DNA of 64,000 bases, from positions 2,294,001 through 2,358,000 of the forward strand of contig OZ176052.1 of NCBI GenBank assembly GCA_964247055.1, in the 5' to 3' direction. Positions within the stretch are counted from its first letter, which is position 1; the number at the start of each line of letters is the position of its first letter. Below the pieces are notes generated by a model that saw nothing but the letters and a program-made list of their open reading frames with translations, was not told the origin of the DNA and made no database searches. The position numbers were made by a program, and so were the translations under genes. Source of the DNA: Paragordius varius. Its lineage: Eukaryota; Animalia; Nematomorpha. Positions 48,373 through 51,300 of the stretch are shown in pieces.

Positions 48373-51300
48373 TTAATCCAAAGGTCTAGGGCCATTAACT
48401 GGCATATTATGTAAAACATTATCAAGTAATTGCAGGGCACGATGTAAATGTATTTCAATCCAACACGGCGTTTCTTTAATATCGCGTCTCGGGTAATCTG
48501 GGCCCCAACCCTTAACAAATGAAAGGCGTAGAATACAAAGCCTTCGTAAATCATCAACACCTACGCTGGCTCCTGCCGCCGCACTTGCTATAAAATAGGA
48601 AAGAGAGGAAAAATGTTTACAATGGATTAAATAAAAGAATATCATTTGTAATAAAGAAATTAATTAGCAGGAGTAAAAAAATGAATATTAGTGAAAATAA
48701 AAAAGAAACAAAGAGTCATGGTGCACGAGGCAAGCATTACCATATGCCCATTAAATAATATTTGTGTTTAAATATTAGCGAAAAAAAGGAGAAAGGAAGG
48801 ACATTTATTGAATATATAATACCATACTACTACTAGGTAATATTCTTTCTATTAATTACTTTAATACAAATACTCTTTTGCTTTATAAACTGTAATACCT
48901 CAATATTATCGAAAATATGTATTATAGGTTTTTCAAGCAATTTGGAAAATAGTGGTAAGAGAGCAAAAATACTAATATATTTTGTAATAACAGTTGTTAA
49001 AATCCGTAATATAACGATAAAGGATAATTTAGAATTAAATGAAAGTATAAATAGAAATTATAAACGATATGTGAAACCCTACGTCAATAGTAATCGCAGA
49101 CTAGTTTCGTGCTTGTTAGCACTCATCAGTACGACACAACTATTTGACTACTTGGGGTTTTTACATATCGATTTCGTATATATATCCAACTTTGCTTTGG
49201 TATATAGGCAGTTGGTTATACGAATTTAAATTAAATTTAATGGAATTTATGAAAATTAAACTGAAAATTTGAAAATAAACTGAAAATTAACTCTAGGGGT
49301 GAGCCTAGATTTTATAGCTACTACTTTCATTTAATTCTATTTAATTATCCTTTATCGTTATATTACGGATTTTAACAACAGTTATTCTAAAACATAACCA
49401 ATCCGTTATTTACCATTACTAATATATTTTATCCATTTTTCTTTGAGTCTGTAAAACTAAAACCAAATGTTTAGATATGTAATTTCTTACCAGCAGCCCC
49501 AATAACTCCAGTTTTAACATCGGGCAGAGCGGTCCCTCCGACCATGGCTGCAGCTTGGGTTGCGGCCGCCGCTTGGGCTAAAGCTGCTTGTTGTCTCATT
49601 TGTGCATAGCATTGCGAAAGGTCAAATGCCTGGCAAAATTAATAAATGTTTTAGAATGAATAAAGATAAAATTTTCAAAATACGCAGACTAAAAAAGACG
49701 AATTTTCTTCTTAAAGTTGTGATTAGCCTGCTCTATCATACCTATACTAAAAACAATTTTAATGCATTTTAAGTGTTGTTTTTGACAATAAAGGGGGTTT
49801 TTTGACAAAATACACTCTGCTGGCTACAAAACCACACTTTTTATATAGTTTATGTTTTATAATATATAAACTATATTTACCTCTCAATTTATATAAAATA
49901 AATTAACATAACAATTTATATCACTATTCGCAGTTTGGCAACTCGAAAAACACGATGAGTTAGTTTTGTTTGTATATATCATTTCAATTTTATATGTACC
50001 CAATCCTTATAATTGGAGAGTTTAACATATGGTTATAATTAGTTTAAAAAAATATGTAACTTGGATTTATTATATATGATATGGGGATTTAAAAATTTGT
50101 TTAATAATATAAACACATAAAACTTATATTAAAGTCAATATTTACTTTCATAAACTACAAAACAAAAATATCCATCATTTTTTTTTAAAAAATTTACATA
50201 ATTTATGCACCAGACTCCTTTATTTAATTGATTTAATTTTTAACCGTTTACGATCGATTTTATAGCGAATTCTATAATTATTGATTATATATATATATAT
50301 ATATATATATATATATATTAAATTTTAAATTTCAAAAAAATAAACGCAAAATAATAACGTACATACTCTACTTAAACATATGTATCTATTCTACCCATCC
50401 TACCCCAAAAAATTAGAAATATAATTTTTATCTATCTTAGGATGTTGGCGACCACATTGATAGATTATACAAATCCTTTAACACGAGTTGAGTTATTAAT
50501 CAGTTTAAAAAATTTTTAGAACATGATTTATATACCATTTACAGTTCTATTCACCCTCGAACAATTCAAATTCACCCTAAAATAAGTTATGTGTTTTTTA
50601 AGATTAATAATTACCTGGTATTTTTTATATTTTTAAAAGAAAAAATTTTGTCAAAAATAAATATAATAATGAAAAAATATTAAACTATGCCACATAAGAA
50701 TATATTTCCTAATGATGACTTATATCCCGAAAAGACATATAATTAAATTTTAGGGAGAATTTGAATTGTAGCATGGTTGGTATAAAATTAAAAAAAATGG
50801 TGCTGTACTTTAATGTAAGCGTTTGGATAAATTTTATGGACAGCATCTCCTGGGGCTCGACCGGCTTCGCGATCCAAAAAATAGCTTTGAACAAAGACAG
50901 AATGATCACTCAGGCAACGAATCCAAACATCACCTTCACCGACTGATGTTAATTGCACACCTTTCCCCACGTGCAATCTAAAACCAAGGTGTAAATCCAC
51001 ATTTATATATATATATATTTCAATCGTAAATATTTTCCCATTTTATATTCAGATATCAAGAAGAGAACTTTGGTAAGATATATATTTTAACAACATATTC
51101 ATTATTTATTAAATATACAGTTTAGAGTCTCTTTTTTCCTTTTTTTGTTTAAAGGGTAAGGACTTAAATTGTATCCGGACATGTGAAGGCTTTAAGACTC
51201 GCCTGCCCACGGGGTGACAGTGATGATGGAAAAATTGCTTTCGGAGTTCAAACTCGGCACGCAAGGTAAGAGTCCGGCGCCCGACCTACTATACCATCAA

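Follow-up and report, generated by a model that had tools for sequence, protein, structure and literature searches.

The animal non-long terminal repeat (non-LTR) retrozymes described by Cervera and de la Pena in 2020 carry a type I hammerhead ribozyme in tandem repeats of 150 to 450 bp with a low GC content, are flanked by target site duplications (TSDs) longer than 4 bp (4 bp being the length in the plant LTR retrozymes), and give highly self-paired monomers; retrozymes are known from rotifers, flatworms, annelids, arthropods, and other phyla (PMC7229834). As a rule, metazoan hammerheads have a helix III of 1 or 2 bp with a palindromic loop; they are considered to work dimerically within tandem transcripts, and single motifs cleave poorly (Cervera and de la Pena 2014, PMC4209133), an axolotl monomer reaching 6% cleavage per hour (PMC7229834). 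The insertions of Penelope-like elements (PLEs), as surveyed by Craig et al. in 2021, show much 5' truncation, partial tandems that constitute pseudo-LTRs, an adjacent inverted 5'-truncated copy that gives rise to inverted repeats, and a tail of 30 to 40 bp that is often present at one end only, and the function of hammerheads in PLEs is described as unclear (PMC8557442). On the basis of their distribution and similarity to pseudo-LTRs, a 2026 preprint by Li, Clavereau, and Pollet regards retrozymes as non-autonomous PLE sequences; animal retrozymes are also reported to be depleted from introns (10.64898/2026.07.22.740005). Here, we analyze a stretch of 64,000 nucleotides from the nematomorph Paragordius varius (assembly GCA_964247055.1, contig OZ176052.1, positions 2,294,001 to 2,358,000 of the forward strand), which we call the window and whose positions are used throughout unless a locus or contig is named. 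A co-Smad gene in the window, presumably Smad4, has a hammerhead-bearing insertion in its last coding intron, and we consider it very probable that this feature is one insertion of a non-autonomous hammerhead retroelement, i.e., an animal non-LTR retrozyme that depends on PLEs.

The hammerhead-bearing insertion and its host gene

Read on the minus strand from 49135 to 49093, the insertion presents GUCGUA, CUGAUGA, GUGCU-AACA-AGCAC, GAAAC-UA-GUC, and UGCGAU in succession, with the conserved core (CUGAUGA and GAAAC) and the cleavage triplet GUC aligning to the core of the Rfam model Hammerhead_HH9. Helix I comprises 6 bp (GUCGUA/UGCGAU), is open-ended, as in the type I hammerheads of Rfam clan CL00010, and runs on into a rod; helix II has 5 bp and the loop AACA, and helix III has 2 bp, which lie inside the palindrome ACUAGU. 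C17 falls on 49099, with the predicted cut at 49099/49098. The minus strand of 49060-49175 folds with -36.1 kcal/mol (z = -5.1 relative to shuffled sequences). These readings bear out the original prediction, which had claimed a complete type I hammerhead with this core and these helices I and II on the minus strand, a cleavage position at 49098/49099, an extension of stem I into a rod of about 105 nt, and a minimal palindromic stem III. The scan that it had proposed against the Rfam hammerhead models was less clear-cut: HH9 is the best model (E = 0.0015 for 49089-49140 on the minus strand), its score of 26.7 bits lies under the gathering score of 52, the part left out of the alignment is the short helix III, and no Rfam family reached its gathering score anywhere in the window. 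We regard the hammerhead as confirmed at the level of the sequence motif, with self-cleavage as a prediction from it.

To describe the insertion, we use a reference unit (L022:1476-1922:-), defined by the alignment of representative copies and of a tandem locus. The insertion spans 48984-49416 (433 bp) between two exact 14-nt direct repeats and consists of two pieces of this unit (Table 1). The main copy is 5' truncated at about unit position 77, stops at 422 without the tail of about 30 nt, and departs from the majority sequence of the family by 4.1%. Joined to it is an arm made of the last 97 nt of the unit (348-444) in the opposite orientation. Two diagnostic substitutions, at unit positions 350 and 383, are common to the arm and the main copy, which argues that both came from one source. 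The arm ends short of the ribozyme, and the locus has a single hammerhead.

The two arms, 48986-49047 and 49322-49386, are identical in 61 of 65 aligned columns, the differences being one substitution and one 3-nt indel. As these stretches pair with each other, the 401 nt at 48986-49386 form a strong fold-back (z = -16), with paired arms of about 62 to 72 bp. The original prediction had described terminal inverted repeats (TIRs) of about 60 bp that enclose the motif; inverted arms do exist, and they prove to be the element's own inverted 3' end. With just one substitution and one indel per approximately 65 nt between the arms, the insertion is, as judged from its sequence, young.

The host gene encodes MH1 and MH2 domains on the minus strand. 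Its translations have an Ala/Gln-rich insert in the MH2 domain and a C terminus (...PRPLD*) without the SSxS motif, a combination that we take to mark a co-Smad, i.e., Smad4. The donor is formed by the exon end at 49492 followed by GTAAG, with the GT at 49491, and the last coding exon starts at 48587 after the AG in ...TTTTATAG, leaving a last coding intron of 904 nt (49491-48588). The element lies inside this intron on the transcribed strand, 75 nt past the donor. The exon boundaries and the strand of MH1 and MH2 thus agree with the predicted sense orientation in the last intron of the presumed Smad4 gene. Separately, a 100-nt direct repeat (48208-48307 and 48369-48468; 95% identical, spaced by 161 nt) places a second version of the 3' portion of the last Smad4 coding exon immediately beyond the stop codon, so that the 3' flank contains a pseudo-exon copy.

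Table 1. Positions of the element, its host gene, and related sequences
Feature	Position	Strand	Basis and remarks
TSD copy 1, TACTAATATATTTT on the + strand	48970-48983	.	Exact 14-nt repeat abutting the insertion
TSD copy 2	49417-49430	.	Exact 14-nt repeat abutting the insertion
Main unit copy	48984-49321	-	BLAST against L022:1476-1922:- and alignments; unit ~77 to 422, tail-less
Inverted arm	49322-49416	+	BLAST, unit 348-444, 91.8%; tail included
Fold-back paired stretch, left arm	48986-49047	.	Partner 49322-49386
Type I hammerhead motif	49089-49140	-	Sequence reading; Rfam HH9
Hammerhead core and helix II	49129-49099	-	Sequence reading
Helix I strands	49135-49130 and 49098-49093	-	Sequence reading
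Rod continuing helix I	49065-49170 (~105 nt)	-	Fold; unit positions ~229-250 pair with 312-333; family-wide feature
Penultimate coding exon, co-Smad gene	~49630-49492	-	Translation; AG acceptor, GT donor; Ala/Gln-rich linker within MH2
Last coding exon, co-Smad gene	48587-48373	-	Translation; ends ...PRPLD; stop 48373-48375
Older copy of the element	8126-8552	-	BLAST 74.5% to unit 10-417; 72% identical overall (~28% diverged)
Penelope-like open reading frame, 787 aa, C-terminal GIY-YIG match	L045:6346-8709 = G000:C1:4914348-4916708	-	Apparently intact
Penelope-like element, 743-aa open reading frame, C-terminal GIY-YIG match	G000:C6:305767-309292		Apparently intact

A dispersed family of noncoding tandem units

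Searches of the genome to which the window belongs (110 Mb in 44 contigs, about 25% GC) revealed that the insertion is one member of a repeat family. The unit measures 447 nt with 26% GC, carries the hammerhead at unit positions 262-308 with the cut after position 300, and is devoid of an open reading frame (ORF), the longest stop-free stretch in a dimer of the unit being 58 aa. A BLAST search with 425 first-look candidates yielded at least 155 matches. When the 31-nt core of the hammerhead served as the query, we found at least 220 sites at up to 3 mismatches, 105 of them exact, and the reversed core pattern, used as a control, gave no match in the 110 Mb; the exact core match at G000:C3:2343099-2343129 on the minus strand is the window copy. 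Many copies deviate by less than 1% from the family majority. The claim of a dispersed, non-autonomous, ribozyme-bearing family related to the hammerheads of Penelope LTRs and retrozymes is upheld.

The standard copies are direct partial tandems with a period of 444 to 447 nt, in which the 3' end of one copy exactly abuts position 1 of the next. For instance, in L022 a partial copy (254-447) precedes two full units, placing three hammerheads in direct tandem, and further partial-plus-full tandems are seen in L002, L004, L006, L008, L010, L011, and other loci. The arrays are short, with 3 or 4 units at most in the sample, and most copies are dispersed. In a survey of 27 distinct loci, the 3' ends are fixed and the 5' ends vary (unit positions 1, 5, 19, 20, 31, 43, 56, 82-95, 107, and beyond), such that coverage climbs from 17 copies at the 5' end of the unit to 55 near its 3' end. 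The same loci frequently have a partial copy upstream, in either direct or inverted orientation. The original prediction had proposed a miniature inverted-repeat transposable element (MITE)-like architecture in place of the usual tandem retrozyme; this does not hold for the family, whose standard copies are direct partial tandems without the TIRs of the window copy and whose TSDs, where detected, measure 12 to 18 bp.

The inverted composites, too, follow a consistent plan. Among the listed exact core matches, all 15 inverted hammerhead pairs within 1 kb have the (-,+) order, i.e., are head-to-head with their 3' ends outward, and none of these 15 is tail-to-tail. Most inverted composites have one outer end at unit position 443-447 and the other at 411-429, so that just one of the two sides carries the tail of about 30 nt. 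In 14 of the 24 insertions surveyed for this purpose, the window copy included, the composite as a whole lies between TSDs of 12 to 18 bp. The genome-wide search that the original prediction had called for thus recovered both further copies and TSDs; the Penelope reverse transcriptase (RT) or GIY-YIG ORF that was to be sought beside the unit was found in none of the 27 loci.

Two side observations concern the hammerhead repeats of this genome. The loci L013 (G000:C4:5136975-5137790) and L027 (G000:C7:9319428-9320150) have near-identical left flanks, ...ACAAAACAGGGGGATATT[A/T]TGGATA, and also share the right flank, which hints that the element lies within a segmental duplication or within a haplotype copy left unresolved. 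Furthermore, a second hammerhead family, unrelated in sequence, is present in L049-L052 (G000:C1:3529103-3529483, C5:3207224-3207636, C4:7816006, and others). Its motif, GUGUGA-CUGAUGA-GUCC...GGAC-GAAAC-GC-GUC-UCACAC, with the helix I GUGUGA/UCACAC, follows the same design as that of the first family, with a helix I rod, a palindromic ACGCGU helix III, and head-to-head pairs, and it scores 28 to 38 bits against Rfam HH9 and Hammerhead_1, just under their gathering scores.

Penelope-like elements as possible mobilizers

The same genome holds intact ORFs of about 740 to 790 aa with a C-terminal GIY-YIG match. One of them, of 787 aa, gave nothing directly when it was itself used in Pfam and PDB sequence searches; its homologues carry RVT_1 (PF00078) and GIY-YIG (PF01541), and on the basis of these homologues and of the six-frame GIY-YIG match, we take it to combine an RT with a GIY-YIG endonuclease. 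In all, about 340 candidate PLE ORF sites were recovered, which belong to several families at 31 to 99% identity and often form head-to-head 5'-truncated pairs. These intact ORFs are possible mobilizers of the hammerhead family, as far as can be judged from sequence. The 787-aa and 743-aa elements are themselves arranged head-to-head with 5'-truncated partners, and further families lie at 31 to 67% identity.

The abundance of PLE ORF copies also raises the alternative that the unit is a pseudo-LTR or solo fragment of an autonomous PLE. Such an origin would account for the insertion architecture, which is the same as that of PLEs (PMC8557442), and for the ribozyme itself, given that hammerheads typically reside in PLE pseudo-LTRs (PMC4209133). 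Against it, we observed that the unit has no ORF within or beside it in any of the 27 sampled loci, that tandem units follow each other directly with a period of 444 to 447 nt, that, among the coordinates listed, a single hammerhead copy has a PLE ORF fragment less than 1 kb away, the fragment being oppositely oriented, and that the unit is not similar to the PLE loci with which it was compared. We consequently judge this alternative unlikely.

Some further observations relate to the contig ends. The telomere repeats of this genome are of the TTAGGG type. In L041 (G000:C7:1-10000), CCCTAA-type telomere repeats at the contig start are followed by about 2 kb of a short simple repeat (170-2250), and a partial copy of the 3' end of the hammerhead element occurs at 6699-6844. 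Weak GIY-YIG-like fragments recur near several contig ends.

Conservation of the ribozyme and consequences for Smad4

Among 40 copies that were selected by overall similarity, unit positions 262-308 constitute the least divergent 47-nt segment (1.3% versus 3.5%; rank 1 of 273). The ribozyme is identical in 28 of these 40, and the variants include core-inactivating changes, such as a G8-to-A change common to two copies. Likewise, exact matches make up 105 of the 220 hammerhead core sites versus 37 of 126 sites for a control 31-mer (unit 170-200), an odds ratio of 2.2 with an indicative p value of 0.001. The window contains a second, much older copy (Table 1), in which a perfect block of 35 nt covers CUGAUGA, helix II, and GAAAC, and in which identity reaches 89% in the ribozyme versus 60 to 72% in the body (p = 0.002, again indicative). 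This copy has AUA in place of the cleavage triplet GUC, no longer possesses the palindrome of helix III, and shows one C-G to U-A double change at the base of the rod; it has no close relatives in the genome. No compensatory changes were detected among the 40 copies, as the family is too young for them. The ribozyme, being the best-conserved part of the unit, is on these sequence comparisons probably under selection at the level of the element and not for Smad4.

These data bear on the idea that the host has co-opted the intronic ribozyme, with Smad4 being regulated by cotranscriptional cleavage in its last intron in the manner of the amniote intronic hammerheads. The sense orientation, the intact core, and the location 75 nt downstream of the donor would all suit such a role. 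At this locus, however, the comparisons give no sign of host selection: since the insertion is young, an intact 47-nt motif is what neutrality predicts, and the same ribozyme, unchanged, is present in 28 of the 40 sampled copies across the genome. Moreover, it is a lone hammerhead with a 2-bp helix III, and such monomers cleave poorly (PMC4209133, PMC7229834). We therefore hold co-option to be highly improbable.

The original prediction had further allowed that the locus might release small or circular RNAs or that the ribozyme might cut the Smad4 pre-mRNA. The first of these fails on the anatomy, because the locus has a single ribozyme and one cleavage site, and excision by the retrozyme route needs two cuts. 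As for the second, one would expect a solitary hammerhead with so short a helix III (2 bp) to cut the pre-mRNA inefficiently, if it does so at all, by analogy with described monomers (PMC4209133, PMC7229834). The insertion is most likely a neutral intronic passenger. That the intronic hairpin of about 62 to 72 bp might be a substrate for a double-stranded RNA pathway is speculation. We see only a very small chance that the hairpin-held sense hammerhead cuts or destabilizes the Smad4 pre-mRNA and so creates a natural, possibly polymorphic hypomorphic allele; if true, this would be a ribozyme-mediated hypomorph of an essential gene of the TGF-beta/BMP pathway.

Origin of the fold-back layout

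Across the family, the inverted arms vary in length between about 30 and more than 350 nt, with junctions that differ between loci. A fold-back layout like that of the window copy is seen in three other copies, L003, L014, and L016. Their arm/body junctions and 3' ends differ, and L003 has its own TSD, from which it follows that the fold-back forms afresh when a copy inserts instead of being passed on as a whole. We had also considered a fold-back subfamily comprising the window copy, L003, and L014 and moving as a unit; this was rejected, as the three differ in their junctions and in their 3' ends and as separate TSDs flank the window copy and L003. The short arms have their inner ends clustered at unit positions 304-358, immediately beyond the ribozyme rod on its 3' side. 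This stable rod may often bring reverse transcription to a halt while the inverted copy is being made, and such a halt would leave a single hammerhead just inside arms of 60 to 100 bp, as in the Smad4 intron.

A MITE-like DNA element with true TIRs, moving by cut-and-paste and carrying a ribozyme, finds some resemblance in the paired arms and flanking direct repeat of the window copy and in the three similar fold-back copies, yet it is already largely refuted and scarcely credible, given that the arms are the element's own inverted 3' end with locus-specific lengths and junctions, that most copies are arm-less direct partial tandems along a 5'-truncation gradient, and that the TSDs have no fixed length and the tail is confined to one end. 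The composite instead has the tandem and inverted insertion structure of the Penelope type (PMC8557442), and the architectural novelty that the original prediction had proposed is lost by its own standard, which tied that novelty to the copies being something other than ordinary PLE pseudo-LTRs. MITE-looking fold-back hammerhead elements can form at insertion, and there is no need to invoke a new class of transposons.

A possible life cycle

Beyond the anatomy, copy number, insertion architecture, TSDs, and conservation pattern reported above, we infer cleavage, circularization, and mobilization by PLE enzymes along the following lines. Loci with two or more tandem units, such as G000:C4:11695798-11696850, would be transcribed, and neighboring hammerheads in the transcript would pair via their palindromic ACUAGU segments to form a stable helix III, whereupon a unit-length RNA would be cut out. 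When a cleavage-to-cleavage monomer was derived from the L022 tandem, its 5' and 3' ends were found to be paired by the rod (z = -4.5), which is the geometry that ligation into a circle requires; a host ligase could then circularize the unit-length RNA. An RT and GIY-YIG endonuclease supplied in trans by a PLE might copy this RNA into staggered nicks, with 5'-truncated copies, partial tandems, an adjacent inverted 5'-truncated copy, a one-sided tail of about 30 nt, and TSDs of 12 to 18 bp as the expected outcome.

Several observations weigh against the reading as a PLE-dependent retrozyme. The HH9 score of the window copy is only about half the gathering score, and 10 of the 24 surveyed insertions have no clear TSD at the boundaries used. 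The conservation tests count related copies as independent, which renders their p values optimistic and indicative only. A direct connection to the putative mobilizers did not emerge either: when ten GIY-YIG loci and four 10-kb PLE loci of one family were compared with the unit by BLAST, nothing meaningful resulted, the sole exception being an unrelated partial copy near a telomere (L040/L041), and in 40 kb of one PLE family no hammerhead was detected by Rfam at an E value of up to 1 or by a relaxed regular expression and pairing descriptor. Finally, the insertions end at unit positions 1 and 447, which is not where the ribozyme cuts (300/301, at a distance of 147 nt). The distance between the termini and the cut implies that a linear cleaved monomer with priming at its 3' end is too simple a template; circles or multimers might instead be primed at a defined internal site near 413-447, or the ribozyme might serve another step.

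If the PLE-dependent retrozyme reading is right, the locus is a clear-cut and, it appears, recent case of a non-autonomous retroelement that bears a hammerhead and has the full insertion signature of the Penelope type, and it lends structural support, from a small genome, to the recent view that animal retrozymes are mobilized by PLEs. The two hammerhead families, both recently active, with intact tandem sources and with distinct TSD, tail, and inverted signatures, could provide a compact 110-Mb system for the study of PLE-driven retrozyme mobilization, a prospect that is likelier than a Smad4 hypomorph.

Comparison with known systems

The amniote intronic hammerheads HH9 and HH10 are likewise in the sense orientation in introns of protein-coding genes, and HH9 furnishes the best Rfam model for the motif described here. 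The amniote versions, however, are single-copy and deeply conserved (cited in PMC7229834), whereas the Smad4 motif sits in a young member of a repeat family that numbers at least 220. With MITEs and fold-back transposons, the window copy shares its short length, noncoding nature, inverted ends, and flanking direct repeats. Unlike in MITEs and other TIR transposons, the inverted ends of the family are inconstant and the TSDs variable in length, and the 5'-truncation gradient, together with the direct partial tandems, points to reverse transcription.

The resemblance to PLEs is more extensive, in that it includes the partial tandems, the adjacent inverted 5'-truncated copy, the tail at one end, the frequent 5' truncation, and the small palindromic helix III of the hammerhead. 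In contrast to autonomous PLEs, the repeats neither enclose nor adjoin an RT/GIY-YIG ORF, and they show no similarity to the one PLE family compared.

The closest match is with the animal non-LTR retrozymes. Common to both are the type I hammerhead, a short palindromic helix III, an ORF-less AT-rich unit (447 nt here), tandem dimers and trimers, TSDs longer than 4 bp, a self-paired monomer, and the presence of PLEs in the same genome. The arrays of the nematomorph family differ from those of animal retrozymes in being short, with most copies dispersed. The family also displays head-to-head composites, a one-sided tail, and TSDs around the composite, which set it apart from the retrozyme descriptions (PMC7229834, 10.64898/2026.07.22.740005) and which link it structurally to integration of the PLE type. 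Taken together, its sequence features fit a further member of the animal non-LTR retrozymes, a known kind of element.

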